DNA from: Selaginella moellendorffii
Lineage: Eukaryota > Plantae > Lycopodiophyta
Length of the DNA: 64,000 bases
Assembly (NCBI RefSeq): GCF_000143415.4
Contig: NW_003314359.1
Span: forward strand, 219,477-283,476
Reading direction: 5' to 3'
Positions 2,413-29,864 of this stretch are shown one piece after another (position 1 is the first letter of the stretch; every line of letters starts with the position of its first letter). The position numbers and the translations under genes are program-made. The notes under the pieces were generated by a model. The model ran no database searches. It had not been told where the DNA came from and was given only the letters and a program-made list of their open reading frames with translations.

Positions 2413-2458
2413 CTGTCAAGAAGTGTTAGTGCCAACAACTTGACTTAATACCCCATAC
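2413..2458 (-). other. 46-nt GT-AG intron-like insertion in integrase core
   Basis: ACAG|GTATGG...CACTAAC...TTCTTGACAG|ACGGA. Removal gives YHPQTDGQTERVN. Confidence 0.85.
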
Positions 2459-5400: not shown

Positions 5401-6375
5401 GTTCCCCTTGGTTTGGCCCCTTTGCTAAACGTGGATCCCGACTTCGTCGTGTTCCCCTTTCGCAGGTTATCGTTGAAATGCACCTTGATGGCCGCATCCA
5501 ACGCTTCCTTGTAGTTAGTCGGGTTCCACCGCATCACTTCACCGCGAGCCCAGGTTTGCAAACCTGATATGAAGGCATGGAACGCATCTATATCCCCCAT
5601 GTCCGTGACAAGTATCCTCTTTGCCATAAACCCATTCACATACTCCTGAATGGTTCCGGTCTGCTTCAGCCTACTCAGCTCATCCTTTAGATGCAGAGTA
5701 GCATTCGGAGGAATGTAAGTTGCGCGGATCCTCACCTTCATCATTTCCCATGTGGCCACCAGTCCTTCGTTGGCCTCTGTTGTTCTCCACCAAGACTTGG
5801 CATTATCTGCCAAGTATGGTTTTGCACATGGGACCTTCTCCGAGCTCGGTAATCGCAACGCTCGGAAGTAGTCCTCCATATCATAAAACCAATCCTCCAC
5901 CACATTATAGTCGTTCACTCCCTTGAAAACCAGTGGGGGCTTTGGTTTGTACTTGGGAACTGCCTGAGGGATTAATTCCACTTCGGTCTATTCGACCTTG
6001 TCTGGTTTTGCCTTAGTCCCTGCCGAAGGGTCCGCACCTTCTGCGCTGCTAGCATCCACAGTCTTTCGCTTTTTCTTCCGCTTCTCATCACGCTTTAGCT
6101 TGTGTACGAGAGTCTCCAGCAGGGCATTGGTCTGTGCCAATTGTCCTTCTAGAATGTCCAATCAAGCCTTGGACAACCGAACCTCACCATCAGACTCCTG
6201 TTTGGAAATTGCCTCACTGGAGTTCTCCTTATGCAAGGGTTCCTCATCCATAGCCTTTTGTTCGACCGGAGGCTCCAGCTCTGGAGGAGGTTCCGTCTTT
6301 GCCTGGGTTCGCTTATGTCCTGCCCTTGCCATCTCCCAGCAATCCGCCTCTATCCTTCGCTAGAACTGAGGAAGA

Positions 6376-6388
6376 GGCTCCAATACCA
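6376..6388 (-). promoter_or_regulatory. primer binding site, initiator tRNA-Met type
   Basis: TGGTATTGGAGCC, 3 nt inside the 5' LTR; resembles the common TGGTATCAGAGCC. Confidence 0.75.
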
Positions 6389-6391
6389 AAT

Positions 6392-7593
6392 TGTAAGCCA
6401 CAAATTTTTCCTTTCCAATTTGCCAGCTTACCTCGTCTATCCGACCAACTCTGCCTTGGCTTGTGCTAAGTTCCCTCGCCAAGGTTCCCGCCTATGGTAC
6501 CAGCTCCTACTTGGTCCTACTTGGTTTCAGCTACTCACTGCACGAGCAACGGAGTGTTAGCCATCCATCTACGGATTCCCAAATCTCTCCCAATCCCCCT
6601 CCTCGGGTTAGACTGGACTTAAGGTTTGGCTACACTCCCCGCAGGCACAAGCAGCCAAGCACACCAAGCCTCTAAGTTCCTAACACCCCTTGGGACCACA
6701 AGACTTGATTATGGGACCCTCTAAATCCCAAGTCTTGGGTGCAGCACTTGCTTCGGGACGTCGGGGCGAAACACCGTGGCCTAACGGCCCAGTATGGGTA
6801 CCTCTACCCCCCCACTTCCATCCCAAAGGGAAGGCCCAAGCCCCTAGGAAGGGCAAGGACTAATGAGCCACAAGGTACTCAAGTGGGGCACCGCTCCACA
6901 TGAGCCGGGAGCACCGCAGTCAGTTTCCCTTTCGGGAGTGGGAGCTGCTCTTGAGCACTTCCTTGGGTGGCCCCTCCGGCACCACTCAAGCCCATGCTCA
7001 CTCCCACCCAAGGCCCCTCGGCCCTAGTCTCAACCTCAAGTCAGTTTGGAAGCACCACTAGAGAGTTCCTTCAAGACTGGTTCTTGAACCTCACTATCCC
7101 TACTATACTTTTGGAACCCCCTGCAGCCCCCCCCCCCCTGGGAGACGCACGCTTTGGGCTTTCACCCCTTGACCCGTATTAGTATTTGGACTTAGTCTCT
7201 GGCTCGGTCTCGGACCCGATTTCGGATCCGACTTCGGATTCAGTCTCGGACTCGATCTCGGACTCGATCTCGGACCCGACCTCGGACTCGACCTCGGACT
7301 CCGTCTCGGACCCGATTTCGGATCTCGGACTCCGTCTCGAACTCGGTCTCGAGCTCGGACTTCGTCTCGAACTCGGTCCCCGAGTCGGTCTCGGACTCGT
7401 TTCCGGACTCTATCTCGAACTCGTTTCCGGACTCTATCTCGAACTCGTTTCCGGACTCTATCTCGAACTCGGTCCTAGAGTCGGTCTTGGACTCAATCTT
7501 CGACTTGGTCCCATCCGATGAACTCTTTGTCATTTTGGTCATGCTTTTGGGGTTCCTTTAGCCTACGACACCTCGGCGAGTTGGTTCCTTACA
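6392..7593 (-). repeat. 5' LTR of family A element (1202 bp)
   Basis: TGTAAG...CTTACA terminal inverted repeats; homologous to 1-1158 and, inverted, to 44497-45659. Confidence 0.95.
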
Positions 7594-10249
7594 TCCGTCC
7601 CCACAAAGTAAAGAAGGCCATCNNNNNNNNNNNNNNNNNNNNNNNNNNNNNNNNNNNNNNNNNNNNNNNNNNNNNNNNNNNNNNNNNNNNNNNNNNNNNN
7701 NNNNNNNNNNNNNNNNNNNNNNNNNNNNNNNNNNNNNNNNNNNNNNNNNNNNNNNNNNNNNNNNNNNNNNNNNNNNNNNNNNNNNNNNNNNNNNNNNNNN
7801 NNNNNNNNNNNNNNNNNNNNNNNNNNNNNNNNNNNNNNNNNNNNNNNNNNNNNNNNNNNNNNNNNNNNNNNNNNNNNNNNNNNNNNNNNNNNNNNNNNNN
7901 NNNNNNNNNNNNNNNNNNNNNNNNNNNNNNNNNNNNNNNNNNNNNNNNNNNNNNNNNNNNCATATATTTGAAGCTTTAAACTCATCAAGCAAAAAAAAGA
8001 AATTTTTGCCTGCAATTTTCAATAAGACCTAGATATTGATTGAGGGCAAACTTATAGAGAAATCTGCAAGTCACTAGAAGATCAACACAAGAAACCATGG
8101 GCTTATGTCTATGAAATAGCTATGTTTTCAAATCCTCACCTATTACACTTTGGTGTATCCAAAGTTACAGGGGTAAGATTAATACAGTTGAATGTCATAT
8201 ACAAGTCCCTTTTGCCAGCTGAATCACACCTGGACTCCACTCCCTACTGGCCAACATATCCACTTCCTTACAGAATATGCTCCAGTAGCACTGGGTAAGC
8301 TTTGGCAAAAGTGCCCATCAATCATTCTTCTTGCTGTTATGAGCTTTGTCTTGAGCACAAATGCCTAGTTTCAGCTGATCCTTACAATTGTAAGTATCTG
8401 GAAATATCATCTAGCATTTTGACTTTCACATTCAGTTTTAGCTAGCATTTGACTAATAGATAGGTCAACATTGTCAACTCGATTGTCGAAGACTATCTTA
8501 AACATCGGATTGGCTCCCACATGTGGGGCACTCAACATGGGTGAAGTCAAATTCATGGATCCATCTAGAGGTTGTTCGTGTGCAACTTGGCGACAGATAA
8601 CATACATACATGGGATAAAGTTCCTGCAAAACCCTGTGATTGAAAGAGCTACTAAATATACAATAGATGACAATTTCTAATTGGCTATGATGAATTAGGT
8701 AAATATTCTATGTTCAAGTTTCATAAGTATTCATATTTTCATGTAAAAGTTAGTTCACTGAACTGATAGTATGCTGACATCCTTAACTCCACGCACATTG
8801 ACATGAACATTATGGGTAGAATTGTTGCTCACACTAGGATAAACATTGAGAACACTATAAGTTCTACCATCATGAATACCATGGAAAAATGCTTAGGCAT
8901 CCTGATATATCACATCCCTACTTCAAGGTTAGTAAATAACTTCCAAGGGGTTATTCCTTTTCTTGAACCTCTTGTTTCAGGTCTACTGTATCTGTTGATC
9001 AACACATGAAAGTAAAACAATTGATATTTCTGGAGGTATTGCTTGTTGATTTGTCCTCCCAACGCTACATTAACTTTTGTTGACTCATTTGTAGAATTCA
9101 ACATGCGAAAATTTAAACCCAGAGACAGTGTCATAGATCAGCTCACCCCCAACGCGACACATACTGCAGTGTGCGGTGTTGAATGCATGTTTAATCCTAA
9201 GTAACTGACAGCTAGTTTCAGCCATAACATTGCTAAGCACAAACCCATCACTTCGAAGAACAAATTTCTTCCGAAAGCTGAAGAGATGTTTGCTCCATAA
9301 TATTGTCATGAAGAATGCGTAATAAACAACCAATGTTGATGTGGCGCTCCACGTGGGTTGGCAGCGCGCTACGTCATCGGCTACCATTTCTTAAGTTGTT
9401 TGGGCAGATCTTTCTCTTGAAAATGCTTTGTTGATTCTCCGAGAAATCACTTTTTTGTAGATCTGTTGCACCAAAGAGCAAGCGATACAAGACTAACCCA
9501 GCAAGCTGGACGCCGAATTCCGCACTGGGAGCTCGATCAAGGACCGCGACAACCTGTGGCGCGGGCAACAAGAGCAGCTCCCAATCGAAGCAATGACCAG
9601 GGAAACACTTTTATAGCTCATTGATCCGGGAGGTGCTGGGACAGGAAGCGCTTCTACAACTCGTGCATCGGGGAATCGAGAGATTTCTCCAGAGATTTCT
9701 CGCTGGTGCTCGCGGCATTCAAGGCTTGCAGCTGGTGCCTCGGGCGGTGCTCAATGTTTCTTTTTGGTTGTTACATCGGCAGATGGAGCTTGTGATTCCC
9801 AAGTTAGGGCGGATGAAAAAGCGCATTCGGAGCCTTTTTCTGCGGAGAAGCATTAGCACAGCAATCACGCAGGGCCGATTGTTTGCGCCACTAGGTAATG
9901 TTGATATTAACTTCGCTTTTTGCATTGCATGGTTTGGCACAATGGATGAAAATGGAAAACCAAGAAGCTTGAATGGATTAAAGTACCATAATTGGGGAGT
10001 AAACGATGGTCAAGCAGGGCACAGAGCTCATGGAACATGGATCCTAGGGCAAGCGGCGCACTGCGGGATCGCTCATCCATTCACGAGGTAAGAATCATCT
10101 TTAGCTTGGGTGGATTTGGCGCTGGAGTGTCTTGTTTAGCTCACTCTAGGAGAAACCATTCGGTCTCTCTTGCGACTTCTTTTGCTTAAGACGCGCTCAT
10201 ATTTTTCTTTCCTTCTCTTGTGTAGCTTAAAAAAAAATGGAAGACTCTG

Positions 10250-11953
10250 CTAGCATGCATCGTCAACAACAGCAGCAACTTTTCTCGTCAAGCTGGGCCT
10301 CACCTCCGCACTGTAGAACTTGGCGGACCTCAAGCTGAGAGCCACGGCGATGGCACACCCAAACAAACAGGTGGCGCCCATGACGAAGAACGTTTCCCTG
10401 TAGCACTTGGCACCGTCGCACAAGAGCGAGGCCTCCAGCGTGTCAGGGCCCCGGTATCTCCTGGCTTGCCGATCGTAGAACACACCCGCAACTTCCACCG
10501 ACAGGACATACGTCCCAATCCCCTTTGCAACGTTTGGGAAGCTCTGGAGAACTCCATAGTGCTTGAGCCCGAAGATCTCCGCGATGATGGTCGACAGCAC
10601 CGCCCACTGGCCTCCGGTGGCGAGCCCGATGATGGTGGAGCCGATGTACAGCGCGCCGGGAAGGCCCAAGGCGATGAGCAAGTTGCCGAGCGCTAGAAAG
10701 CCGACCACCGCAGCGAACACGAACGGCCGTCCAATGCCAAACTTGTGGAGGAGTATCTCGGACACGAAGCCGCAACCGATTGCTCCCAGGAAGTCCCAGA
10801 GGTTGAGGAGAGCCACGAAGATGTTCATCCTTGCGGTGGAGTATCCCAGGGAGGCGCTCAGCTGGCCCAAGTTGTTGTAGAAGGTGGACACGGTTCCCAG
10901 GCCGCAGGAAGTCGCGATGAGCATGAGCCACATATCGATGCTCAGCAAGGCGTGGACGAGTCTGTAGTCCTTCCCTCTCGCTGGAACTTGGAACCATCTG
11001 TGGATGCCAGCGCCGGAAGCTTGAGAAGGAGAATGGTCGACGACTTGCAGAGAAATAGGCGTGGAATTCATATCCGCGAGCTGAGCTTCAGAGTTATGAG
11101 ATGGCGGTATGCTTTCGACAGCACCAGCACTGTTCGAATGTGATCGAATCTTAGCTCGGACAACCAGAGCAACTGGAAGTAGGACGATGAGCAGCATCAA
11201 ACCAAAGAACACCAAAGGCACCGAGTCTGGAAGCCTGCTTGTCATGCTCCCCTCGATGACTGTGATGACGAGGAGATAGGCAGCTAAGGCAAAGGTGGTG
11301 ACGAGGAACGAGCGGAGAATGGACTTGTCGCTGGACTTCTCGATGACAGGCACGGGCCCGAGGAAGAGGCCAAGCAGCAGATACAGGAACGTCGGTAGCA
11401 GCCCCAGGAAGAGCAGAAAGGAGCGAGCGTGGAACTGGAAGAAAGTCTGGAACACAACCGCGAATGCGGTTGCTCCCAGGCCATTGCTGCCGTCGAGCAA
11501 GCTCAGCAGCATCCCCTGGTGGTGTTTCGGGAAGTTTGTGGCACAGGTGGTCAGAACAGCCGTGACTGCAAAGCCTACAGAGGCGCCGACGAGAAACATA
11601 TAGAAGCTCATTTGCCATGCCGGTGGACGAGCAATCTGGTGAGTGATGGCGAGCCAGGCCATGGTGTAGCCGAACAGGTTGAGCAATGCGGAGACGAACA
11701 TGGTGAGACGGGGGCCGACTCTCGCATTGAGCAAACCGGCCAGGAAAGCCATGCTAGTGCCGAGATCCTTGAAGAAGCTGATGGTATTGACGGACTCTTG
11801 CTTGTAATGCAGGGAGATTTTGAGCTCCTGTGAGAACAAGCTGAAGCTGGTGAGCGTGCCTCCGGTGATTGCTATCAAGTAGAAGCCCGAGACTGCGACG
11901 ATCCAGCGATTGCTAGCGATGGAGAAGAGTTCCTTGGCCATTGCTAGCGCCAT
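10250..11953 (-). CDS. nodulin-like / NFD4-family major facilitator superfamily transporter, copy 1 (567 aa, intronless)
   Basis: Many hydrophobic helices. Motifs FSLFSQELKISLHY.QE...FFKDLG, TCATNFP, EIFGLKHYG and C-terminal CDGAKCYRETF. First ATG at 11953. Confidence 0.92.
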   Translation of the reverse strand: MALAMAKELFSIASNRWIVAVSGFYLIAITGGTLTSFSLFSQELKISLHYKQESVNTISFFKDLGTSMAFLAGLLNARVGPRLTMFVSALLNLFGYTMAWLAITHQIARPPAWQMSFYMFLVGASVGFAVTAVLTTCATNFPKHHQGMLLSLLDGSNGLGATAFAVVFQTFFQFHARSFLLFLGLLPTFLYLLLGLFLGPVPVIEKSSDKSILRSFLVTTFALAAYLLVITVIEGSMTSRLPDSVPLVFFGLMLLIVLLPVALVVRAKIRSHSNSAGAVESIPPSHNSEAQLADMNSTPISLQVVDHSPSQASGAGIHRWFQVPARGKDYRLVHALLSIDMWLMLIATSCGLGTVSTFYNNLGQLSASLGYSTARMNIFVALLNLWDFLGAIGCGFVSEILLHKFGIGRPFVFAAVVGFLALGNLLIALGLPGALYIGSTIIGLATGGQWAVLSTIIAEIFGLKHYGVLQSFPNVAKGIGTYVLSVEVAGVFYDRQARRYRGPDTLEASLLCDGAKCYRETFFVMGATCLFGCAIAVALSLRSAKFYSAEVRPSLTRKVAAVVDDAC

Positions 11954-12495
11954 TGCTGCCAGCTTTGTGGACCGCACAAGGTAACGAGAAAGCTCTTCAG
12001 AATCATGGTTTTCATGCCTTTATATCTTGTTATAATTGCAGTCCATGTGACGCTCTGACTCGAGCCGTCGCTTGCTCTTTGAAATGGCAAGCTTCTTCAA
12101 GCAGAGAGTTTAACATAAACTTGGCAATAACGTAGTTTCGTGGCTAAGTTTTCTATGCGCAGGTCAACTAAGTTGAGCGTTGACTGCATTTTCCATACCA
12201 GTGACAGATTAGCGTCCGCATTTGGCCCCAGATGCGAACGCTAATCTGTCATTGAGGCGGAAAAGTCTACAAATTGGTCTTGAATGGAGGCGGATCCATG
12301 GAAAGTTCGTGCAAATCGTAACGATCTTAAATTCGTACTGCCAAATAGAAATCTTAGTTTTTTGCAACTATATAAGCAGGGCACTGGAAGGACACTGATA
12401 TCCGCATCTCAAAGTTGAGAAAGCCTAGCATCCAAGCATACATTTCCATTTCCATCTTTCGTCTTCCAAGCTTTCTTGCTTACACAGTCCCATCC
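11954..12495. promoter_or_regulatory. bidirectional intergenic promoter of the MFS / 2OGD pair (repeated at 20459-20998 and 26515-27054)
   Basis: About 540 bp between divergent ATGs. CTATATAAG near 12368, W-box-like TTGACY motifs near 12162-12185, and a 50-bp inverted repeat at 12202-12251. Confidence 0.6.
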
Positions 12496-14808
12496 ATGGC
12501 TGGCATCAAGGCATTTGTTGACAGCTGCAACGGGACACTGTCGAGCGTTCCAGAGAGATACATGATGCCGAATGGAGCTGCCGATGTCTCCCGGTACGCG
12601 GTGCTGCCGATAGTCGATGTGGCGAGCGAGAGCTTCGAGAGGGATCTCGTTGACGCTTGCACAAAGTACGGAATGTTCTACGTAAGTTTTGATGAGGTGT
12701 CTTTTTCCTGTAGTACATGTTTGCTAAGTTGTTGTTCTTCTGACTTGCAGCTCAAGAACCACGGAATTCACACCGAGGATGTGATGAGGTGCGCTCTCGA
12801 GTTCTTCAACTCGCCCAGCGAGGACAAGATGCGGTACTACACCGAGGAGATCTTCACACCCGTCCGCTACTGCACCAGCATGATGCCTTCGAAAGAAGAG
12901 AAGCTCGAGTGGCACGACCACCTCCAGATGTGGCTCAAGGAAGAGTCCCTCGGAGCGCACCCCTGGCCCGCGTTCCCAGCCAGCTACAAGTCAGTTTCTC
13001 GCTCCTTGATTATGGTATTGCTCTAGATTGCTGACGCTCTATATGCAACAGGGACGTTGGATCCGAGTACGCCAGAAACATCTTCAAGCTCGGGAAGAGG
13101 ATGCTGTTGGTCATGTCCGAGGGACTTGGCCTCCGCTCAAACCGTCTTCTGGAAGCATTCGCAGAGATGGTTCTTCTGACGAGAGCAAACTTCTATCCGG
13201 CTTGCCCAAACCCGAGGCAGGCCTTGGGCATGGAAGGCCACACCGACAGCGGCGGCCTCACGTTTGTGCTCCAGGATGGAGTCGGGGGATTGCAGCTGAA
13301 GCAAGGCGAGGATTGGTACAACGTGAAGCCACTCGAGGGAATGCTGGTGGTCAACATGGGCGATCAGCTAGAGGTACGAGCAGTCGAAAAGTTTGTGGAA
13401 TGATCCTAATGTTGTCCTTGGTTGGTGATCTCAGAAGCTGAGCAATGGGAGGTACAAGAGCATATTGCACAGGGTGATGGTGAACTCGAAGAGTTCGAGG
13501 CTGTCCGTCGGGGCGTTCCTGGGGCCGTCACTGGATGCGGAGATCAGCCCCATTCCAGAGCTGGTGAGCCAGGAGAGTCCGGCAAAGTACCGCAGCAGGA
13601 CTTACAGGGACTACATGCCCACCAAGCTCTCGTATTTCGACAATATGCGGCAGCTCCAAGCAACAGCCAAGGTGCTCTCCATCACAAAGGTAGCGAGTGA
13701 GTTTTCTAGCTAGGATGTTTAGATGAAGTCCTCTCCTCATTCTCCAGGATTCTGAGCGAGTAGCCATTGTTTCGGATCGGACAATCTTGTATCCTCAAGG
13801 AGGTGGACAGCCCGGGGACAGAGGCTCCATTTCGAGCTTGAATGGAGACACTACATTCCAAGTTCAGGACACAAGGATGAAGAATGGAGTTGTAAGTTTT
13901 CGTTGTGTTTCTTCTCAGAGGATTTACTGCTTCACTCTTGTGCTGTCTGTAGGTCTATCACTATGGTGTCTTTGAGCCATCAGACTCTACTTTCGAAGCT
14001 GGCCAGGAAGTCAGCCTGAGAGTTGAGTCGCAACGCAGGGAATTACACTCAAGGTGCAACACAATCTACAAGCAAACCAGTACCTATCCAGTTTTTCTTT
14101 CTTTATTTTTTCGAGAACAGGTTGCACACCGCGGGGCACTTGATAGATGTATGCATGAAACTTGTGGGACGGACTTTGGAGCCGGCAAAAGGAAACCATT
14201 CTCCAGAGGGGTATGACTTTCGATTCTCAACTTTACACTTTGCAAAGCTTTTCTTTCCGGGATAGAGCTTTTGTCGAGTACATAGGAGCAATTCCGAGCG
14301 GTGAGATAGAGTCGACTCGTGTTGCCCTGCAGAAAGAAATTGATCGTTTGATAGCAAGTGGTGCTTCGGTGAGTTGTGCTATGCCGATGCTTTGTGTTTG
14401 TTCTTATTCTTTTTGGTGCCAGTGTATTTATTCGTGCTAGTACTACAGGTAAATGCATCTGTGCTACCTTATGACGAGGCTGCTGGCTTGTGCGGCGGGA
14501 GCCTTCCCGATTACATATCCAAGGTATACACTATGAATTGGATACAACTTATGATCTTTGTATCTGACCTCCAATGTTCAAATGCCACAGGATAGCAGTC
14601 CCAGAATCGTGAGGATCGGAGATCACACGGGATGCCCCTGCGGTGGCACTCATGTCGACGATGTTAGCTCACTCACGGGCTTGAAAGTAAGCGACTTCGA
14701 AAGAAAGAGCGTCAAGAGGTTTTGAGCTTACATATGTTGCGCGCTTCACAGGTGACGCAGATCAGAGTGAAAAAAGGAGTGACAAAAGTTAGCTACACGC
14801 TGAAATGA
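12496..14808 (+). CDS. chimeric 2OG-Fe(II) dioxygenase :: AlaX tRNA-editing domain fusion (predicted 555 aa, 11 exons)
   Basis: Exons 12496-12681, 12751-12989, 13052-13373, 13435-13689, 13748-13891, 13953-14053, 14121-14210, 14266-14368, 14449-14523, 14591-14686, 14752-14808, all with GT-AG introns. Junction reads YRDYM|PTKLSYFDNM in frame. Confidence 0.72.
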
Positions 14809-15344
14809 TCAGAAGCAACCGGCAAGATGTTTCGGAGATATTTGAATCGTGTTACAGTAAGCTCTGTGCGGTTTCGTGTCATGGTTTCTTGTGTTGATCT
14901 TCTCGTGACTTGCAGATTTCTCTATGATTCTCGAGAGCTTCGCCCTTGATCAATATCTCCTCCGGGTTTCAGGTCTTGCTGAAAACCGCAGAGATATTTC
15001 TCTCAGTTCGCTATTGATGCTCACAAAATCAGATTTTAAGTACTTTTGCTGATAGATGGCATTGTGATTCATAGTGTCGGACTTACTTGATCTGCCGTGC
15101 AATGACGCAGGCACCGACGCACCAAAAGCACTCTGTGAGATCTAAAAGAAATGGAAAGACAGAGAGTGGACACCTGCTGGAAAAGACTAGTCGCTAGTGC
15201 GTTTCGCTCAATTGCTTTTCGTGTGTTTGGATAGCAAGCCTGCTACTTTTTACTCCACAGTTCTTACGATGAATATAATTCCTTGTGATAGTCATACACA
15301 AGCATCATTCTGGGTATAATCGTGCAATTCTATATTAAACCATA

Positions 15345-16440
15345 TAATCATCCCAATCCGAATGCTGAAAGTTCATATACTTCGCGATCATCCTTTTGAA
15401 CATTCGAATGAATTGTTCCACAAGACTATCTGATTGTGGATGATAAGCACTCGTGAAAGTGTGGCGTATCCCCAACTGAGATGTCAAAACATAAAATGCT
15501 TTAGCCATAAATGTGGGATCATTATCCTAAAGAATTTGCTCTGGATAAGAATGCTAGAACACCACTCGATTAAGGAGGAAGTATCTAACAACAGTTATAA
15601 AGGCACTAACAAAAGCACCAACTTCCACCCAATGAATCAAGTAATCAAAAGCAATAATAATATCTCAGGTGAACAGCCTGAGGCGAGCTTATCAAAGGCT
15701 TTTCATGAACAGTGATGAAAATGCTGGAGGGATCGACATTACTAGCAATTGACCGTGGAAAAAGTCCCATAAGATCAAATGCCACCAACTCAAATGGAGA
15801 AATTGCAATTAACTCTAATGGTCCTTCTGGAGCACGAAGGAGAGTATTACAAACTTAACACCAAACGCAATTATGCATATACTAGATAATATCACGTTGT
15901 ATTTCTAGCTAATAGAAAAACCTATGTAGCTTGTCAGTTACACGACGATGTCCCATATGCCCACCTAAAACAAGAGAATTGTGGTAGGCATAGAGAAACC
16001 GCAAAATAAAGACAAAAGACACTACCAATTGTAAATGATCATCAGAATCCGTCCCCACAAAGTAAAGAAGGCCATTTTAAAGGCGATACTGAGAATGTAA
16101 ATGTTAGAATGGCAAGTCATCAGCAAGTCATGTAGGATTCTCAAACCCATCTCGAATCCTTCGCATCCATAGCTCACGTTTTTTAGCCTCACAAACCTCA
16201 TCAAGAAAATGTAGATTTTGCTCTGCACCTTGCGGACACTGAACGTCGAGTATAACAACCGTCAACAGCATAGAATCCTCGTTTAGAAAATTTACAGACG
16301 CCAAAACAATAAACTCATTAAAAACATAAAAGATAGTGGAAAAGGAAGAAGAGCTCGAGAAATGGCATTAGCATTAGCCATGAAACTCCCAAAGCAATTA
16401 ACAACATCAAAATCATATATTTGAAGCTTTAAAATTTATC
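15345..16440 (-). mobile_element. degenerate gypsy fragment (RNase H end and integrase N-terminus) of family C
   Basis: Aligns by eye with about 41240-42200, with many G>A/C>T changes. The same fragment reappears at 7594-7622 and 7961-7990. Confidence 0.85.
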
Positions 16441-18754
16441 AAGCAAAAAAAAGAAATTTTTGCCTGCAATTTTCAATAAGACCTAGATATTGATTGAGGG
16501 CGAACTTATAGAGAAATCTGCAAGTCACTAGAAGATCAACACAAGAAACCATAACACAAAACCACACGGGCTTATGTCTATGAAATAGCTATGTTGGTCG
16601 TATAGTTCAAATCCTCACCTATTATGCTTTGGTGTATCCAAAGTTACAGAGGTAAGATTAATACAGTTGAATGTCATATATAAGTCCCTTTTGCCGGCTG
16701 AATCACACCTGGACTCCACTCCCTACTGGCCAACATATCCACTTCCTTACAGAATATGCTCCAGTAGCACTTGGTAAGCTTTGGCAAAAGTGCCCATCAA
16801 TCATTCTTCTTGCTGTTATGAGCTTTGTCTTGAGCACAAATGCCTAGTTTCAGCTGATCCTTACAATTGTAAGTATCTGGAAATATCATCTAGCATTTTG
16901 ACTTTCACATTCAGTTTTAGCTAGCATTTGACTAATAGATAGGTCAACATTGTCAACCCGACTGTCGAAGACTATCTTAAACATCGGATTGGCTCCCACA
17001 TGTGGGGCACTCAACATGGGTGAAGTCAAATTCATGGATCCATCTAGAGGTTGTTCGTGTGCAACTTGGCGAGCTATCAGATAACATACATACATGGGAT
17101 AAAGTTCCTGCAAAACCCTGTGATTGAGCCATTCAGTGATCCTACTACAAGAGCTACTAAATATACAATAGATGACAATTTCTAATTGGCTATGATGAAT
17201 TAGGTAAATATTCTATGTTCAAGTTTCATAAGTATTCATATTTTCATGTAAAAGTTAGTTCACTGAACTGATAGTATGCTGACATCCTTAACTCCACGCA
17301 CATTGACATGAACATTATGGGTAGAATTGTTGCTCACACTAGGATAAACATTGAGAACATTATAAGTTCTACCATCATGAATACCATGGAAAAATGCTTA
17401 GGCATCCTGATATATCACATCCCTACTTCAAGGTTAGTAAATAACTTCCAAGGGGTTATTCCTTTTCTTGAACCTCTTGTTTCAGGTCTACTGTATCTGT
17501 TGATCAACACATGAAAGTAAAACAATTGATATTTCTGGAGGTATTGCTTGTTGATTTGTCCTCCCAACGCTACATTAACTTTCGTTGACTCATTTGTAGA
17601 ATTCAACATGCGAAAATTTAAACCCAGAGACAGTGTCATAGATCAGCTCACCCCCAACGCGACACATACTGCAGTGTGCGGTGTTGAATGCATGTTTAAT
17701 CCTAAGTAACTGACAGCTAGTTTCAGCCATAACATTGCTAAGCACAAACCCATCACTTCGAAGAACAAATTTCTTCCGAAAGCTGAAGAGATGTTTGCTC
17801 CATAATATTGTCATGAAGAATGCGTAATAAACAACCAATGTTGATGTGGCGCTCCACGTGGGTTGGCAGCGCGCTACGTCATCGGCTACCATTTCTTAAG
17901 TTGTTTGGGCAGATCTTTCTCTTGAAAATGCTTTGTTGATTCTCCGAGAAATCACTTTTTTGTAGATCTGTTGCACCAAAGAGCAAGCGATACAAGACTA
18001 ACCCAGCAAGCTGGACGCCGAATTCCGCACTGGGAGCTCGATCAAGGACCGCGACAACCTGTGGCGCGGGCAACAAGAGCAGCTCCCAATCGAAGCAATG
18101 ACCAGGGAAACACTTTTATAGCTCATTGATCCGGGAGGTGCTGGGACAGGAAGCGCTTCTACAACTCGTGCATCGGGGAATCGAGAGATTTCTCCAGAGA
18201 TTTCTCGCTGGTGCTCGCGGCATTCAAGGCTTGCAGCTGGTGCCTCGGGCGGTGCTCAATGTTTCTTTTTGGTTGTTACATCGGCAGATGGAGCTTGTGA
18301 TTCCCAAGTTAGGGCGGATGAAAAAGCGCATTCGGAGCCTTTTTCTGCGGAGAAGCATTAGCACAGCAATCACGCAGGGCCGATTGTTTGCGCCACTAGG
18401 TAATGTTGATATTAACTTCGCTTTTTGCATTGCATGGTTTGGCACAATGGATGAAAATGGAAAACCAAGAAGCTTGAATGGATTAAAGTACCATAATTGG
18501 GGAGTAAACGATGGTCAAGCAGGGCACAGAGCTCATGGAACATGGATCCTAGGGCAAGCGGCGCACTGCGGGATCGCTCATCCATTCACGAGGTAAGAAT
18601 CATCTTTAGCTTGGGTGGATTTGGCGCTGGAGTGTCTTGTTTAGCTCACTCTAGGAGAAACCATTCGGTCTCTCTTGCGACTTCTTTTGCTTAAGACGCG
18701 CTCATATTTTTCTTTCCTTCTCTTGTGTAGCTTAAAAAAAAATGGAAGACTCTG

Positions 18755-20458
18755 CTAGCATGCATCGTCAACAACAGCAGCAACTTTTCTCGTCAAGCTG
18801 GGCCTCACCTCCGCACTGTAGAACTTGGCGGACCTCAAGCTGAGAGCCACGGCGATGGCACACCCAAACAAACAGGTGGCGCCCATGACGAAGAACGTTT
18901 CCCTGTAGCACTTGGCACCGTCGCACAAGAGCGAGGCCTCCAGCGTGTCAGGGCCCCGGTATCTCCTGGCTTGCCGATCGTAGAACACACCCGCAACTTC
19001 CACCGACAGGACATACGTCCCAATCCCCTTTGCAACGTTTGGGAAGCTCTGGAGAACTCCATAGTGCTTGAGCCCGAAGATCTCCGCGATGATGGTCGAC
19101 AGCACCGCCCACTGGCCTCCGGTGGCGAGCCCGATGATGGTGGAGCCGATGTACAGCGCGCCGGGAAGGCCCAAGGCGATGAGCAAGTTGCCGAGCGCTA
19201 GAAAGCCGACCACCGCAGCGAACACGAACGGCCGTCCAATGCCAAACTTGTGGAGGAGTATCTCGGACACGAAGCCGCAACCGATTGCTCCCAGGAAGTC
19301 CCAGAGGTTGAGGAGAGCCACGAAGATGTTCATCCTTGCGGTGGAGTATCCCAGGGAGGCGCTCAGCTGGCCCAAGTTGTTGTAGAAGGTGGACACGGTT
19401 CCCAGGCCGCAGGAAGTCGCGATGAGCATGAGCCACATATCGATGCTCAGCAAGGCGTGGACGAGCCTGTAGTCCTTCCCTCTCGCTGGAACTTGGAACC
19501 ATCTGTGGATGCCAGCGCTGGAAGCTTGAGAAGGAGAATGGTCGACGACTTGCAGAGAACTAGGCGTGGAATTCATATCCGCGAGCTGAGCTTCAGAGTT
19601 ATGAGATGGCGGTATGCTTTCGACAGCACCAGCACTGTTCGAATGTGATCGAATCTTAGCTCGGACAACCAGAGCAACTGGAAGTAGGACGATGAGCAGC
19701 ATCAAACCAAAGAACACGAAAGGCACCGAGTCTGGAAGCCTGCTCGGTATGGTCCCCTCGATGACTGTGACGACGAGGAGATAGGCAGCTAAGGCAAAGG
19801 TGGTGATGAGGAACGAGCGGAGAATGGACTTGTCGCTGGACTTCTCGATGACAGGCACGGGCCCGAGGAAGAGGCCAAGCAGCAGATACAGGAACGTCGG
19901 TAGCAGCCCCAGGAAGAGCAGAAACGAGCGAGCGTGGACCTGGAAGAAAGTCTGGAACACAACCGCGAATGCGGTTGCTCCCAGGCCATTGCTGCCGTCG
20001 AGCAAGCTCAGCAGCATCCCCTGGTGGTGTTTCGGGAAGTTTGTGGCACAGGTGGTCAGAACAGCCGTGACTGCAAAGCCTACAGAGGCGCCGACGAGAA
20101 ACATATAGAAGCTCATTTGCCATGCCGGTGGACGAGCAATCTGGTGAGTGATGGCGAGCCAGGCCATGGTGTAGCCGAACAGGTTGAGCAATGCGGAGAC
20201 GAACATGGTGAGACGGGGGCCGACTCTCGCATTGAGCAAACCGGCCAGGAAAGCCATGCTAGTGCCGAGATCCTTGAAGAAGCTGATGGTATTGACGGAC
20301 TCTTGCTTGTAATGCAGGGAGATTTTGAGCTCCTGTGAGAACAAGCTGAAGCTGGTGAGCGTGCCTCCGGTGATTGCTATCAAGTAGAAGCCCGAGACTG
20401 CGACGATCCAGCGATTGCTAGCGATGGAGAAGAGTTCCTTGGCCATTGCTAGCGCCAT
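18755..20458 (-). CDS. nodulin-like MFS transporter, copy 2 (567 aa)
   Basis: Intact ORF nearly identical to copy 1. Confidence 0.92.
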   Translation of the reverse strand: MALAMAKELFSIASNRWIVAVSGFYLIAITGGTLTSFSLFSQELKISLHYKQESVNTISFFKDLGTSMAFLAGLLNARVGPRLTMFVSALLNLFGYTMAWLAITHQIARPPAWQMSFYMFLVGASVGFAVTAVLTTCATNFPKHHQGMLLSLLDGSNGLGATAFAVVFQTFFQVHARSFLLFLGLLPTFLYLLLGLFLGPVPVIEKSSDKSILRSFLITTFALAAYLLVVTVIEGTIPSRLPDSVPFVFFGLMLLIVLLPVALVVRAKIRSHSNSAGAVESIPPSHNSEAQLADMNSTPSSLQVVDHSPSQASSAGIHRWFQVPARGKDYRLVHALLSIDMWLMLIATSCGLGTVSTFYNNLGQLSASLGYSTARMNIFVALLNLWDFLGAIGCGFVSEILLHKFGIGRPFVFAAVVGFLALGNLLIALGLPGALYIGSTIIGLATGGQWAVLSTIIAEIFGLKHYGVLQSFPNVAKGIGTYVLSVEVAGVFYDRQARRYRGPDTLEASLLCDGAKCYRETFFVMGATCLFGCAIAVALSLRSAKFYSAEVRPSLTRKVAAVVDDAC

Positions 20459-20998
20459 TGCTGCCAGCTTTGTGGACCGCACAAGGTAACGAGAAAGCTC
20501 TTCAGAATCATGGTTTTCATGCCTTTATATCTTGTTATAATTGCAGTCCATGTGACGCTCTGACTCGAGCCGTCGCTTGCTCTTTGAAATGGCAAGCTTC
20601 TTCAAGCAGAGAGTTTAACATAAACTTGGCAATAACGTAGTTTCGTGGCTAAGTTTTCTATGCGCAAGTCAACTAAGTTGAGCGTTGACTGCATTTGCCA
20701 TATCAGTGACAGATTAGCGTTCGCATTTGGCCCCAGATGAACGCTAATCTGTCATTGAGACGGAAAAGTCTACAAATTGGTCTTGAATGGAGGCGGATCC
20801 ATGGAAAGTTCGTGCAAATCGTAACGTTCTTAAATTCGTACTGCCAAATAGAAATCTTAGTTTTTTGCAACTATATAAGCAGGGCACTGGGAGGAGACTG
20901 ATATCCGCATCTCAAAGTTGAGAAAGCCTAGCATCCAAGCATACATTTCCATTTCCATCTTTCGTCTTCCAAGCTTTCTGGCTTACACAGTCCCATCC

Positions 20999-22167
20999 AT
21001 GGCTGGCATCAAGGCATTTGTTGACAGCTGCAACGGGACACTGTCGAGCGTTCCAGAGAGATACATGATGCCGAATGGAGCTGCCGATGTCTCCCGGTAC
21101 GCGGTGCTGCCGATAGTCGATGTGGCGAGCGAGAGCTTCGAGAGGGATCTCGTTGACGCTTGCACAAAGTACGGAATGTTCTACGTAAGTTTTGATGAGG
21201 TGTCTTTTTCCTGTAAGTTGTTGTTCTTCTGACTTGCAGCTCAAGAACCACGGAATTCACACCGAGGATGTGATGAGGTGTGCTCTCGAGTTCTTCAACT
21301 CGCCCAGCGAGGACAAAATGCGGTACTACACCGAGGAGATCTTCACACCCGTCCGCTACTGCACCAGCATGATGCCTTCGAAAGAAGAGAAGCTTGAGTG
21401 GCACGACCACCTCCAGATGTGGCTCAAGGAAGAGTCCCTCGGAGTGCACCCCTGGCCCGCGTTCCCAGCCAGCTACAAGTCAGTTTCTCGCTCCTTGATT
21501 TTTCGTATTGATCTAGATTGCTGACGCTCTATATGCAACAGGGACGTTGGATCCGAGTACGCCAGAAACATCTTCAAGCTCGGGAAGAGGATGCTGTTGG
21601 TCATGTCCGAGGGACTTGGCCTCCGCTCAAACCGTCTTCTGGAAGCATTCGCAGAGATGGTTCTTCTGACGAGAGCAAACTTCTATCCGGCTTGCCCGAA
21701 CCCGAGGCAGGCCTTGGGCATGGAAGGCCACACCGACAGCGGCGGCCTCACGTTTGTGCTCCAGGATGGAGTCGGGGGATTGCAGCTGAAGCAAGGCGAG
21801 GATTGGTACAACGTGAGGCCACTCGAGGGAATGCTGGTGGTCAACATGGGCGATCAGCTAGAGGTACGAGCAGTCGAAAACTTTTTGAGAAACTGTGGAT
21901 TGATCTTTGTCTTGGTTGATTGTCTTGTATCAGAAGCTCAGCAATGGGAGATACAAGAGCATATTGCACAGGGTGATGGTGAACTCGAAGAGTTCAAGGC
22001 TGTCCGTCGGGGCGTTCCTGGGGCCGTCACTAGACGCGGAGATCAGCCCGATTCCAGAGCTGGTGAGCCAGGAGAGTCCGGCAAAATACCGCAGCAGGAC
22101 TTATAGGGATTACATGCACGAGGTGTACACGGAGCACTTCTCCGGGAAGAATGTCTATGTGGCTTGA
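20999..22167 (+). CDS. 2-oxoglutarate/Fe(II)-dependent dioxygenase (DOXC class, DMR6/DLO-like), copy 2, 326 aa
   Basis: Exons 20999-21184, 21240-21478, 21542-21863, 21934-22167. Motifs NFYPACP, HTD...HRV iron triad, RLS 2OG-binding, LKNHGI. Confidence 0.92.
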
Positions 22168-22926: not shown

Positions 22927-24926
22927 TGCCAAGTGCTACAGGGAAACGTTCTTCGTCATGGCCGCCACCTGTTTGTTTGGGTGTGCTCGCCGTGGCTCTC
23001 AGCTTGAGGTCCGCCAAGTTCTACAGTGCGGAGGTGAGGCCCAGCTTGACGAGAAAAGTTGCTGCTGTTGTTGACGATGCATGCACTCGCAAGAGCGACC
23101 GAATGGTTTCTCCTGGAGTGAGCTAAACAAGACACTCCAGCGCCAAATCCACCCAAGCTAAAGATGATTCTTACCTCGTGAATTGATGAGCGATCCCGCA
23201 ATGCGCCGCTTGCCCTAGGATCCAGGTTCCATGAGCTCTGTGCCCTGCTTGACCATCGTTTACTCCCGCCAAAGTTAAAACCAACGTCATGCTGGAAAGC
23301 ACCAAATATGGTACTTTAATCCAGCTGCAGATACCTTATTCAAGCTTCTTGGTTTTCCATTTTCATCCATGCAGTAAAAAGCGAAGTTAACAACCTATTG
23401 GCGCAAACAATCGGCTTGCTAATCTGCGCGCTTTTTCATCCGCCCTAACTTGGGAATCACAAGCTCCATCTGCCGGTGCAACTGTAACAACCAAAAAGAA
23501 ACGTTGAGCACCGCCCGAGCAAGCCTTGAATGCCGCGAGCACCAGCGACGTCTGGAGAAATCTCTGGATTCCCCGATGCACGAGTTGTAGAAGCGCTTCC
23601 TGCCCCAGCACCTCCCGGATCCATGAGCTATAGAAGTGTTTCCCTGATCATTACTTCGACTGGGAGCTGCTCTTGTTGCCCGCGCCACAAGTTGTCGCTG
23701 TCCTTGATCGAGCTCCCAGTGCGGAATTCGGCGTCCAGCTTGCTGGGTTCGTCTTGTATCGCTTGCTCTTTGGTGCAACAGATCTAGAAAAAAGTGATTT
23801 CTCAGAGAATCAACAAAGCATTTTCAAGAGAAAGATCTGCCCAAACAACTTAAGAAATGGAAGTGCCACATCAATATTGGTTGTTTATTACTCATTCTTC
23901 ATAACAATATTATGGAGCAAACATCTCTTCAGCTTTCTGAAGAAATTTGTTCTTCGAAGTGATGGGTTTGTGCTTAGCGATGTTATGGCTGAAACTAGCT
24001 GTCAGTCACTTAGGATTAAACATGCATTCAACACCGCACACTGCAGTATGTGTCGCGTTGGGGGTGAGCTGATCTATGACACTGCCTCTTGGTTTAAATT
24101 TTCGCATGTTGAATTCTTCAAATGAGTCAACGAAAGTCAATGTAGCGTTGGGAGGACAAATCAACAAGCAATACCTCCAGAAATACCATTTGTGTTACTT
24201 TCATGTGTTGATCAACAAATACAGTAGACCTGAAACAAGAGGTTCGAAAAACCCCTTGGAAGTTATTTTACTAACCTTGAAGTAGGGATGTTATATATCA
24301 GGATGCCTAAGCATTTTTCCAATGGTAGAACTTGACATCGTTAAGTCCACGCACATTGACATGAACATTATGGGTAGAATTGTTGCTCACATTATGGCAT
24401 ATCAGTTCAGTGAACTAACTTGTACATGAAAATATGAATACTTATGAAACTTGAACATAGAATATTTACCTCATTCATCATAGCCTATTAGAAATTGTCA
24501 TCTTTTGTATATTTAGTAGCTCTTGTAGTAGGATCACTGAATGGCTCAAGCACAGGGTTTTGCAGGAACTTTATCCCATGTATGTATATTATCTGATAGC
24601 TTGCCAAGTTGCACACCAACTACCTCTAGATGGTTATCCATGAATTTTACTTCATCCATGTTGAGTGCCCCACATGTTGGAGCCAATCCGATGTTAAGAT
24701 AGTCTTGGACATTCGAGTTGATAATGTTGACCTATCTATTAGTCAAATGCTAGTTAAAACTGAATGCGAAAGTCAAAATGCTAGATGATATTTCTAGATA
24801 CTTACAATTGTAAGGATCAGCTGAAACTAGGCATCTGTGCTCAAGACAATGCTCATAACAACAAGAAGAATGATTGATGGGCACTTTTGCCAAAGCTTAC
24901 CCGGTGCTACTGGAGCATATTCTGTA
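22927..24926. other. about 2-kb inversion carrying the MFS copy-3 3' end and its downstream flank
   Basis: Sequence is the reverse complement of about 16750-18917. Left breakpoint CCTTA|TGCCAAG. About 65 bp of filler follows the right breakpoint. Confidence 0.9.
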
Positions 24927-27054: not shown

Positions 27055-28214
27055 ATGGCTGGCATCAAGGCATTTGTTGACAGCTGCAACGGGACACTGT
27101 CGGGCGTTCCGGAGAGATACATGATGCCGAATGGAGCTGCCGATGTCTCCCGGTACGCGGTGCTGCCGATAGTCGACGTGGCGAGCGAGAGCTTCGAGAG
27201 GGATCTCGTTGACGCTTGCACAAAGTACGGAATGTTCTACGTAAGTTTTGATGAGGTATCTTTTTCCTGTAAGTTGTTGTTCTTCTGACTTGCAGCTCAA
27301 GAACCACGGAATTCACACCGAGGATGTGATGAGGTGTGCTCTCGAGTTCTTCAACTCGCCCAGCGAGGACAAAATGCGGTACTACACCGAGGAGATCTTC
27401 ACATCCGTCCGCTACTGCACCAGCATGATGCCTTCGAAAGAAGAGAAGCTTGAGTGGCACGACCACCTCCAGATGTGGCTCAAGGAAGAGTCCCTCGGAG
27501 TGCACCCCTGGCCCGCGTTCCCAGCCAGCTACAAGTCAGTTTCTCGCTCCTTGATTTTTCGTATTGATCTAGATTGCTGACGCTCTATATGCAACAGGGA
27601 CGTTGGATCCGAGTACGCCAGAAACATCTTCAAGCTCGGGAAGAGGATGCTGTTGGTCATGTCCGAGGGACTTGGCCTCCGCTCAAACCGTCTTCTGGAA
27701 GCATTCGCAGAGATGGTTCTTCTGACGAGAGCAAACTTCTATCCGGCTTGCCCGAACCCGAGGCAGGCCTTGGGCATGGAAGGCCACACCGACAGCGGCG
27801 GCCTCACGTTTGTGCTCCAGGATGGAGTCGGGGGATTGCAGCTGAAGCAAGGCGAGGATTGGTACAACGTGAGGCCACTCGAGGGAATGCTGGTGGTGAA
27901 CATGGGCGATCAGCTAGAGGTACGAGGAGTCGAAAAGTTTGTGGAATGATCTTGATGTTGTCCTTGGTTGGTAATCTCAGAAGCTGAGCAATGGGAGGTA
28001 CAAGAGCATATTGCACAGGGTGATGGTGAACTCGAAGAGTTCGAGGCTGTCCGTCGGGGCGTTCCTGGGGCCGTCACTGGATGCGGAGATCAGCCCGATT
28101 CCAGAGCTGGTGAGCCAGGAGAGTCCGGCAAAGTACCGCAGCAGGACTTATAGGGATTACATGCACGAGGTGTACACGGAGCACTTCTCCGGGAAGAATG
28201 TCTATGTGGCTTGA
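27055..28214 (+). CDS. 2OG-Fe(II) dioxygenase, copy 3, 326 aa
   Basis: Exons 27055-27240, 27296-27534, 27598-27919, 27981-28214; same motifs intact. Confidence 0.92.
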
Positions 28215-28314
28215 GCCTTGAGCAGTCAAAAGCGCCAAGTTTTTCCCATTCTCATGAATAAAAGCGAATGAATTTTTTTGTTAACGCTAATGTTAACGCT
28301 GAGCTTCCGCGACA

Positions 28315-28419
28315 ATCATTCCACAAACTTTTGAACTGCTTCTACCTTTGGCTGTGATCTCCCATGTTGACCACCGGCACTCTCTCTAGTGGCGCCACGT
28401 TGACCAGTTCTCGCCTTGG
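28315..28419 (-). pseudogene. inverted degenerate fragment of 2OGD exon 3 / intron 3
   Basis: Reverse complement reads CAAGGCGAG..TGGTCAACGTGGCGCCACT...GGTGGTCAACATGGGAGATCA...AAAAGTTTGTGGAATGAT, matching about 27848-27950. Confidence 0.8.
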
Positions 28420-28650
28420 TTGTGAGAGGTGTCTTGAAGAAGCTCCCTTGGCCGCTGCCTAGAAGGTGGTAAAAAGAGATTTGTTAGAAAAGAAATGTCT
28501 GTTAGAAGGATCTTAGTGGAACTCTATGTCAAGGACTTACGAAAGTTCATAAGAAACTCCCTTGACCGTGCCCAGGAGGTTCTTAGCAGTCCGGGAAGAA
28601 CAGAGATGGGTTCTATTAGGGCGTCACTCGTTTGCTGCTTGGCAAGAAGC

Positions 28651-29864
28651 ATGGCGGAGGCGGTCGTGGCGGCGGCAGCGCAGCCCACCAAGCTCTCGTA
28701 TTTCGACAATATGCGGCAGCTCCAAGCAACAGCCAAGGTGCTCTCCATCACAAAGGTAGCGAGTGCGTTTTCTAGCTAGGATGTTTAGATGAAGTCCTCT
28801 CCTCATTCTCCAGGATTCTGAGCGAGTAGCCATTGTTTCGGATCGGACAATCTTGTATCCTCAAGGAGGTGGACAGCCCGCGGACAGGGGCTCCATTTCG
28901 AGCTTGAATGGAGACACTACATTCCAAGTTCAGGACACAAGGATGAAGAATGGAGTTGTAAGTTTTCGTTTTGTTTCTTCTCAGAGGATTTACTGCTTCA
29001 CTCTTGTGCTGGCTGTAGGTCTATCACTATGGTGTCTTTGAGCCATCAGACTCTACGTTCGAAGCTGGCCAGGAAGTCACCCTGAGAGTTGAGTCGCAAC
29101 GCAGGGAATTACACTCAAGGTGCAACACAATCTACAAGCAAACCAGTACTTATCTCTTTTTTTTTTCGAGAACAGGCTGCACACTGCGGGGCACTTGATA
29201 GATGTATGCATGGAACTTGTGGGACGAACTTTGGAGCCGGCAAAAGCAAACCATTCTCCAGAGGGGTATGACTTTCGATTCTCAACTTTACACTTTGCAA
29301 AGCATTTCTTTCCGGGATAGAGCTTTTGTCGAGTACATAGGAGCAATTCCGAGCGGTGAGATAGAGTCGACTCGTGTTGCCCTGCAGAAAGAAATCGATC
29401 GTTTGATAGCAAGTGGTGCTTCGGTGAGTTGTACTATGCCGATGCTTTGTCTTTGTTCTTATTCTTTTTGGTGCCAGTGTATTTATTCGTGCTAGTACTA
29501 CAGGTAAATGCATCTGTGGTACCTTATGACGAGGCTGCTGGCTTGTGCGGCGGGAGCCTTCCCGATTATATATCCAAGGTATACTCTTATGAATTGGATA
29601 CAACTTATGATCTTTGTATCTGACCTCCAATTTTCAAATGCCACAGGATAGCAGTCCCAGAATCGTGAGGATCGGAGATCACACGGGATGCCCCTGCGGT
29701 GGCACTCATGTCGACGATGTTAGCTCACTCACGGGCTTGAAAGTAAGCGACTTCGAAAGAAAGAGCGTCAAGAGGTTTTGAGCTTACATATGTTGCGCGC
29801 TTCACAGGTGACGCAGATCAGAGTGAAAAAAGGAGTGACAAAAGTTAGCTACACGCTGAAATGA
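28651..29864 (+). CDS. free-standing alanyl-tRNA editing protein (AlaX / tRNA_SAD family), 8 exons
   Basis: Exons 28651-28755, 28814-28957, 29019-29119, 29176-29265, 29321-29423, 29504-29578, 29647-29742, 29808-29864. Motifs PTKL.Y.D, YPQGGGQP.D.G, HTAGH and CGGTH. Confidence 0.92.

Follow-up and report, generated by a model that had tools for sequence, protein, structure and literature searches.

Can the rearrangement of a tandem gene array in a plant attach an unrelated neighbouring gene to one of the array members, and is the outcome a new enzyme or merely a by-product? This question is raised by a 64,000-nucleotide stretch of the genome of the lycophyte Selaginella moellendorffii (assembly v1.0, GCA_000143415.2, scaffold GL377663.1:219477-283476; in the following called the window, to which all positions refer), where an earlier note had proposed a newborn in-frame fusion between a gene for a 2-oxoglutarate (2OG) dioxygenase and a gene for AlaX, a tRNA-editing domain. 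The dioxygenase-AlaX join is real in the assembly. On balance, we favour the reading that it is a real, young and haplotype-specific chimera, most likely a redundant and selectively neutral by-product of array rearrangement and not a new coupled function.

Self-comparison of the window reveals three repeat units, and two additional units lie directly upstream of it. In every unit, a 2OG dioxygenase gene has as its head-to-head partner a nodulin-like major facilitator superfamily (MFS) transporter gene, which lies on the minus strand. Unit 1 matches unit 2 from 7961 to 13618 (16414-22117, 97.5%), and it matches unit 3 in two pieces: 10419-13618 corresponds to 24992-28164, and 13617-15343 corresponds to 28683-30399 (97.9%). 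Compared with unit 3, unit 1 is without the 520 bp from 28165 to 28684, and the dinucleotide GC is common to both edges. In unit 1, bases 13607-13626 read GGGACTACATG/CCCACCAAG, with the junction between 13617 and 13618; in a longer context this is ...GACTACATG/CCCACCAAG..., and the junction-spanning sequence is GGACTACATGCCCACCAAG. In unit 3 the left edge reads ...TACATGC/ACGAGG... at 28164/28165, and the right edge ...GCGCAGC/CCACCAAG at 28684/28685. Here, the left half continues into CACGAGGTG..., which is the dioxygenase tail with a stop codon that ends at 28214, and the right half is preceded by ...GCGGCAGCGCAG. When translated, the dioxygenase of unit 3 ends with ...RDYMHEVYTEHFSGKNVYVA and a stop codon and its AlaX starts with MAEAVVAAAAQPTKLSYFDNM..., and exon 4 of unit 1 gives ...RTYRDYMPTKLSYFDNMRQLQATAKVLSITK, with the peptide RTYRDYM/PTKLSYFDNM across the joint. 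Both parent genes are identifiable, and the reading frame is continuous over the joint.

The exon model of the chimera has a total length of 1668 nt, or 555 codons, with 0 internal stops and ten GT..AG introns of 55-80 nt, and the lengths of the AlaX exons are the same in units 1 and 3. Of the catalytic motifs, HTD is found at 13239-13247, LHRV/RLS in exon 4, HTAGH at 14125-14139 and CGGTH at 14639-14653, the last two being identical in units 1 and 3. In these respects (an in-frame junction near 13617, an open frame, ten introns with unchanged exon lengths, and preserved motifs) the earlier note is borne out. The in-frame state alone is, at the same time, no evidence of selection, because a random join of two coding regions will be in frame one time in three.

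The two domains had also been named correctly, as seen from Pfam hits and structural matches in searches run on the separate exons, one by one. In the dioxygenase half, DIOX_N (PF14226) is found in exon 2 with 31.6 bits (cut-off 27.3) and 2OG-FeII_Oxy (PF03171) in exons 3 and 4 with 66.1 and 26 bits (cut-off 23); residues H205, D207, H261, R271 and S273 are invariant or nearly so in the family alignment, and the nearest solved structures are those of JOX2 (6lsv), ACC oxidase and ANS. In the AlaX half, tRNA_SAD (PF07973) is found in exon 10 with 26.5 bits (cut-off 24), and exon 5 alone scores 28.8 bits, just below the cut-off of 30.3, against profile positions 483-525 of PF01411 (tRNA-synt_2c), a domain that public gene models at the locus carry. 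Exon 5 matches residues 29-54 of the AlaX-M structure 2e1b with an E value of 4.9e-5, and exon 10 matches residues 170-194.

The fused state is derived, because the dioxygenase tail is kept in unit 2, in unit 3 and in 13 further copies that were fetched from four scaffolds. Among these 16 copies, the dioxygenase half of unit 1 has three private changes, i.e., the conservative replacement R234K, one silent and one intronic change, and so small a number indicates that the unit 1 copy is young, as the word newborn had implied. The dioxygenase group as a whole is Selaginella-specific and recently amplified, with 32 proteins of at least 90% identity on four scaffolds, which NCBI names 'flavanone 3-dioxygenase 2' or 'DMR6-like'; that DOXC dioxygenases include species-specific groups is mentioned in a passage of PMC8839085, which cites Kawai 2014. 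The AlaX of unit 1 differs from that of unit 3 by about 22 substitutions and 2 indels and is, therefore, a separate locus. It is not free-standing, being joined to 310 foreign residues.

What the two partners lost by the join can be specified as follows. The count of 16 missing dioxygenase residues stands, and none of the residues in the lost tail is invariant or nearly invariant in the family alignment, but to call this half intact is too strong. In the structural model of an intact paralogue (pLDDT 89), the terminal helices are predicted to span residues 306-315 and 320-323, and the fusion breaks the chain after residue 310, which would remove half of the first and all of the second helix and leave the C-terminal helices incomplete. 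For AlaX, a loss of 11 N-terminal residues is one option among three. The start annotated for unit 3 is the ATG at 28606 (271 aa), the frame remains open up to an ATG at 28495 (308 aa), i.e., for 52 codons upstream of the ATG that the earlier note had used (28495-28651), and contigs from RNA reach at least 28492, one of them extending 191 nt upstream of the junction point (run X15, see below). Depending on which ATG is used, the loss is 11, 26 or 63 residues, and it is possible that a putative targeting peptide in the AlaX 5' region would be lost with them. The conserved AlaX module is complete, because in the alignment to 2e1b the fusion point falls at about residue 1 of the archaeal protein.

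Table 1. Positions of the chimeric gene, its junctions and its parents in the window.
Feature	Position	Strand	Remarks
Chimeric frame, 555 codons, 11 exons/10 introns	12496..14808	+	Dioxygenase residues 1-310, then AlaX from PTKL to its own stop
Dioxygenase exons 1-3	12496-12681, 12751-12989, 13052-13373	+	DIOX_N and first part of 2OG-FeII_Oxy with HTD
Fusion exon	13435..13689	+	61 dioxygenase codons (H, RLS), then 24 AlaX codons
Remaining exons of the model	13435-13689, 13748-13891, 13953-14053, 14121-14210, 14266-14368, 14449-14523, 14591-14686, 14752-14808		First entry is the fusion exon
Left junction	13617..13618	+	GC microhomology (equals 28163-28164 and 28683-28684)
AlaX-derived segment, 1727 bp	13617..15343	+	Copy of 28683-30399, 97.9%; exons 1 (partial)-8, 3' untranslated region, downstream DNA
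Right non-homologous junction	15343..15350	+	AlaX segment meets spacer element 'D'
Spacer element 'D'	15344-16413		Related stretches at 41232-42039 and on the other haplotype
520 bp absent from unit 1	28165..28684	+	Dioxygenase tail and stop, intergenic DNA, AlaX 5' end
Nodulin-like MFS transporter gene, unit 1	10250..11977	-	Head to head with the unit 1 dioxygenase; belongs to the amplified unit
Unit 2 dioxygenase, 326 aa, EFJ09361.1	20999..22167	+	Tail intact; no AlaX behind
Unit 3 intact dioxygenase, 326 aa	27055..28214	+	One parent arrangement
Unit 3 intact AlaX, 271 aa as annotated	28606..29864	+	Frame open from 28495

Whether the chimera is transcribed was judged from Logan contigs of four sequencing runs, of which X1 is DNA-like and X2, X12 and X15 are RNA-like. 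Such contigs drop minor paths, and the evidence is confined to the records listed, beyond which there are 228 further records. All ten introns are supported at their model positions by spliced contigs of the three RNA-like runs. One X2 contig (contig 22, 765 nt), in which introns 1-3 are spliced out, is free of mismatches to unit 1 from 12751 to 13532; it includes 13327A, a letter that is private to unit 1 among the 16 copies and absent from the 15 others fetched; another X2 contig carries the private 13551C. The dioxygenase part of unit 1 is, in other words, transcribed and correctly spliced into exon 4. Further downstream, the X2 contigs listed contain no unfused dioxygenase tail, and the 511-nt AlaX contig of this run ends exactly at 13617 with no loose letters, AlaX's own 5' end being held by a separate contig. 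A break of this form would arise if two distinct sequences converged on that base. In X15 and X12 the AlaX contig runs directly into its own 5' end, and in all four runs contigs end or diverge at 13617/13618.

Several observations weigh against the fusion. No contig listed in the one DNA-like and three RNA-like runs bridges 13617/13618, and the loose ends at the junction belong to AlaX's own 5' end (four of the four runs) and to the dioxygenase's own tail (X1, X15 and X12). Of the listed AlaX sites that separate units 1 and 3 and at which a run departs from unit 1, every one (13815, 13822, 14014, 14122, 14130, 14172 and 14514) has all of its depth on a letter other than that of unit 1, and AlaX RNA of the unit 1 type is not seen among the contigs listed. 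The lack of a bridge in contigs is a weak negative, because Logan contigs drop minor paths. Taken together, a check of the junction in RNA, as the earlier note had proposed, supports a unit 1-specific transcript upstream and a break at the junction base in X2 but yields no bridging contig, and we think it probable, with some reserve, that a transcript crosses the junction. Arithmetic on the bin depths of X2 could not separate fused from unfused models and was not used.

The same contigs contain other variants of the two genes. The AlaX contigs of the runs between 13700 and 14650 correspond neither to unit 1 nor to unit 3; the RNA type shares seven sites with unit 3 and five with unit 1, and additional letters are private to X1, which makes at least four AlaX sequence types in the data of the species. 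AlaX transcripts have a spliced 59-nt intron in the 3' untranslated region (14857-14915) that begins 48 nt after the stop, and X15 and X12 have a different replacement at 14838-14921. An X1 contig has a joint from 13734 back to 13184 with AGA between the ends, and there is also an X1 skip from 13245 to 13330 (AC..GC) with GCGTG between; the joints in X1 (13184-13734) suggest further rearranged dioxygenase/AlaX fragments in that sample. A contig has a loose end before 12379 that is not found in the window, and its origin is in other copies or in an upstream exon.

The alternative that survives best accepts the junction but regards the gene as effectively a pseudogene, a dead end of array turnover whose transcript is mis-spliced, truncated or unstable and yields no chimeric protein. 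Part of the public annotation can be read in its favour. The locus has three inconsistent gene models: RefSeq gives the 5' part of unit 1 as a 153-aa product with intron 2 retained (P0278), which also hints at imperfect processing and thereby weighs against an intact chimera; a 344-aa GenBank model (12496-13713) crosses the junction, keeps intron 4 and stops at 13713; and a 354-aa model (13230-14808) crosses the junction and contains 2OG-FeII_Oxy together with tRNA-synt_2c. The fusion is, in this sense, already partly annotated, and the models that run through the junction speak for the chimera. Also in favour of a pseudogene are the non-appearance of unit 1-type AlaX letters in any RNA contig listed and the predicted truncation of the dioxygenase's terminal helix, which in the case of helix 306-315 may harm folding. 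On the other side, the X2 contig that is identical to unit 1 has introns 1-3 correctly spliced, all splice sites are intact, and the stop codon is the normal AlaX stop. Nonsense-mediated decay usually follows a rule of 50-55 nt, and it is not expected here, because the intron in the 3' untranslated region starts only 48 nt after the stop. We find this alternative rather unlikely, although worth keeping in mind.

A second alternative is an artefact confined to the 2011 Sanger assembly, due for instance to a chimeric or deleted clone or to a mis-join of 97%-identical repeats, in which case the actual genome would lack a fused copy. The sequence is that of an old draft in scaffolds that has gaps in the vicinity, unit 1 begins right after one of them (7623-7960), the units are 97-98% alike, the four runs show unfused ends and no bridge among the contigs listed, and the DNA-like X1 has a single AlaX contig, of non-unit-1 type, at all sites listed. 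But mis-joins of repeats occur at homologous sequence and not at a 2-bp microhomology of unrelated positions, and it would take two junctions of this sort, at 13617 and 15343; the AlaX piece has substitutions of its own, so that a second AlaX locus exists; the contig graph of X2 breaks exactly at the junction base, and Logan contigs remove weak side paths; and the two haplotypes were assembled separately. Runs of N occur only at 160-701 and 7623-7960, so that units 1-3 are in one contig. An artefact of this kind we consider improbable.

The other haplotype is found on GL377569.1, an allelic region assembled separately, where the flanking genes GT34, aldose epimerase and SRP54 are the same and identity is about 96%. 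From this it follows that unit 1 is not a misplaced allele, and the possibility that the other haplotype had been falsely placed in tandem was rejected on these grounds and for lack of a gap between the units. GL377601.1 was rejected as an allele, since with about 90% identity and different neighbours it is an older paralogous locus. Of the fetched loci, L001 (14076-20996) equals 702-7622 of the window at 100%, and position x of L003 is position x+10998 of the window. Comparison with the other haplotype, which had been suggested as a check, could be carried through for the dioxygenase, whose copies closest to unit 1 are unfused there, but not for AlaX: loci L001, L002 and L004-L009, examined for the other haplotype's AlaX, contain no AlaX DNA, and exact-protein look-ups gave no match for it.

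How could the junction have arisen? The earlier note assumed a 520-bp deletion between GC microhomologies, and it is correct that 28165-28684 is absent with GC at the edges. Deletion is only one possible origin, because a non-homologous junction, at 15343, delimits the AlaX piece on the right side as well, and the spacer behind that point follows, in the other haplotype, an ordinary dioxygenase 3' flank. To exemplify, consider the two routes. In the first, a duplication would be followed by a 520-bp microhomology deletion. In the second, which would be a templated insertion in one step, a single repair or replication event would place a copy of 28683-30399, with AlaX truncated at its 5' end, in the 3' end of a dioxygenase gene of the unit 1 type. 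Lost in exchange would be the dioxygenase tail, the flank behind it and ~500 nt at the start of the spacer, and both ends would have microhomology. The two origins are equally good. A hint of the single event may be that the 67 nt to the left of the junction have three differences to unit 3, two of them common to distant paralogues, whereas the 83 nt to the right are identical, and that the unit 1 dioxygenase is not the nearest relative of that of unit 3 in the tree of copies. Still further to the right, from AlaX exon 10 to beyond the 3' untranslated region, 560 bp (14577-15135 and 29633-30191) are 100% identical in units 1 and 3 with flanks that differ by ~2%, which is probably due to later gene conversion.

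In the reading that we favour, a head-to-head cassette of dioxygenase and MFS transporter is tandemly amplified, with AlaX as a single-copy neighbour behind the last unit (unit 3), and a 1.7-kb AlaX copy without promoter and first codons was joined to the unit 1 dioxygenase at its codon 310. As this join chanced to be in frame, the promoter of the unit 1 dioxygenase would drive a transcript that crosses the junction and is open through all AlaX exons to the AlaX stop. The predicted 555-aa protein would consist of a complete AlaX-M module and a dioxygenase in which half of the last helix is missing. Since both parents persist (there are more than 15 copies of the dioxygenase and one or more intact AlaX genes), the chimera is most likely redundant.

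The low decay of the unit 1 copy also speaks for the reading that we favour. Between units 1 and 3, the ratio of replacement to silent changes per site (pN/pS) is 0.22 in the AlaX half (5 replacement and 7 silent changes, p = 0.011) and 0.11 in the dioxygenase half (4 and 10). When the AlaX changes are polarised with the expressed RNA-contig type, the unit 1 branch has 2 replacement and 5 silent changes and the unit 3 branch 3 and 2. The comparison of both halves, another proposed check, shows that the unit 1 copy is undecayed but does not demonstrate selection on the chimera, the numbers being small and much of the divergence possibly older than the fusion.

Database searches were made with parts of the chimera and with its relatives. 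Against 1.84 billion protein representatives, the 85-aa fusion exon matched only dioxygenases, with matches extending to query residue ~60-80; no match reached the end of the AlaX part, and there was no 555-aa entry. The same exon gave no candidate in a collection of 5.8 billion proteins, a search that is uninformative given its length window. In a search with the paralogue P0001 at its full length, restricted to candidates of 180-574 aa, none of the 120 matches listed was a protein with an AlaX domain. The architecture of dioxygenase plus AlaX, which the earlier note had proposed to look for, was thus not found elsewhere, neither among the 1.84 billion representatives nor among the matches listed for close relatives; that the protein collections searched hold no 555-aa protein counts against a translated chimera. 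No description of the fusion was found, and the literature on AlaX in Selaginella yielded nothing relevant.

The speculation that the fusion pairs amino-acid modification with tRNA proofreading finds no support here: the parents remain, and the architecture was not found elsewhere. We know of no biochemical link between DOXC enzymes and tRNA editing, which counts against a joint function. That the chimera is a functional, selected bifunctional enzyme, in which tethering, or placement of AlaX under the stress/defence-type promoter of the dioxygenase, is useful, seems quite improbable, for although the 555-codon frame is open with all motifs and splice sites present, the changes on the unit 1 AlaX branch and the pN/pS below 1 in both halves point in its favour, and the AlaX module tolerates N-terminal fusion, as seen from mammalian Aarsd1L with its p23-like CS domain joined to an AlaX domain (PMC9496497), these counts are very low and the divergence may for the most part be older than the fusion, both parents are present in intact form and are expressed, the architecture is missing from the 1.8 billion representatives and the close relatives listed, the copies in the alternative haplotype that come closest to unit 1 have no fusion, and the terminal helix of the dioxygenase is predicted to be cut. 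To the more specific proposal of a stable 555-aa protein under selection, with both activities or a new one, e.g., AlaX proofreading that is induced together with a stress/defence-responsive dioxygenase, we attach very little credence. Were it true, the birth of a bifunctional enzyme that joins specialised metabolism to translation quality control would have been caught in the act.

The array has also been rearranged in other ways. In the intergenic DNA of unit 3 (28315-28421) there is a ~108-bp inverted dioxygenase fragment, ~80-82% identical to the reverse strand of 13299-13404, a scar that an earlier rearrangement left at the edge of the array. About 2.1 kb of the upstream part of unit 3 is inverted in relation to units 1 and 2 (22927-24926 versus 8269-10412). 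Intron 3 and exon 4 of unit 2 (21871-22086) have dense differences to units 1 and 3, including two short insertions; this patch matches the version of most other copies, and the copies in the array are mosaics in which two types of intron 3 occur. The RefSeq dioxygenase models P0155 and P0281 start with an upstream exon that lies opposite the MFS transporter gene, in antisense to its 5' end (11900-11981), and therefore the head-to-head genes overlap in transcription. Retrotransposon-like repeats surround the assembly gaps at 160-701 and 7623-7960 (1-7622 and 44497-45665). A second, unrelated duplicated segment (45822-47171 versus 51633-52977) has an internal short-period repeat at ~46812-47322.

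The locus is a clean, datable case of a tandem array that yields an in-frame chimeric gene in a lycophyte, with the parents adjacent and both breakpoints exact to the base, and it is well suited to ask whether fusions of recent origin are transcribed, translated and tolerated. At present, it has no bearing on open questions of tRNA editing or dioxygenase function. It is, in our view, a genuine young chimeric gene of a known kind, probably transcribed and probably redundant. Young chimeric genes arise by the joining of neighbours, as in conjoined or read-through genes, deletion fusions and genes of the Drosophila jingwei type. In common with these, the Selaginella gene has nearby parents, a continuous open reading frame, an upstream promoter and microhomology at the joint; its expression across the joint is probable, and a function of the product would be speculative.

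Compared with its two parent families, the chimera is as follows. It shares DIOX_N and 2OG-FeII_Oxy, with HxD...H and RxS, with the plant DOXC 2OG/Fe(II) dioxygenases (DMR6/DLO/F3H-like), but belongs to a Selaginella-specific amplified group and is without the last 16 residues. AlaX-M proteins act in trans and deacylate Ser- or Gly-tRNA(Ala). With the free-standing AlaX-M of Pyrococcus horikoshii (2e1b) and the plant AlaXp, stand-alone forms of which have been reported (PMC7564348), it has in common tRNA_SAD, the zinc motifs HxxxH/CxxxH and, probably, the AlaRS-type beta-barrel piece. The AlaX half differs from these in having no promoter or start codon of its own, in the lack of 11-63 N-terminal residues and in its attachment to a 310-residue oxygenase. 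Mammalian Aarsd1L, finally, also carries an AlaX-type module with a foreign N-terminal domain from upstream exons (PMC9496497), but it is a conserved and regulated isoform for which a role as co-chaperone has been shown, whereas the fusion in Selaginella goes back to a recent rearrangement of the DNA of one haplotype and has another partner.

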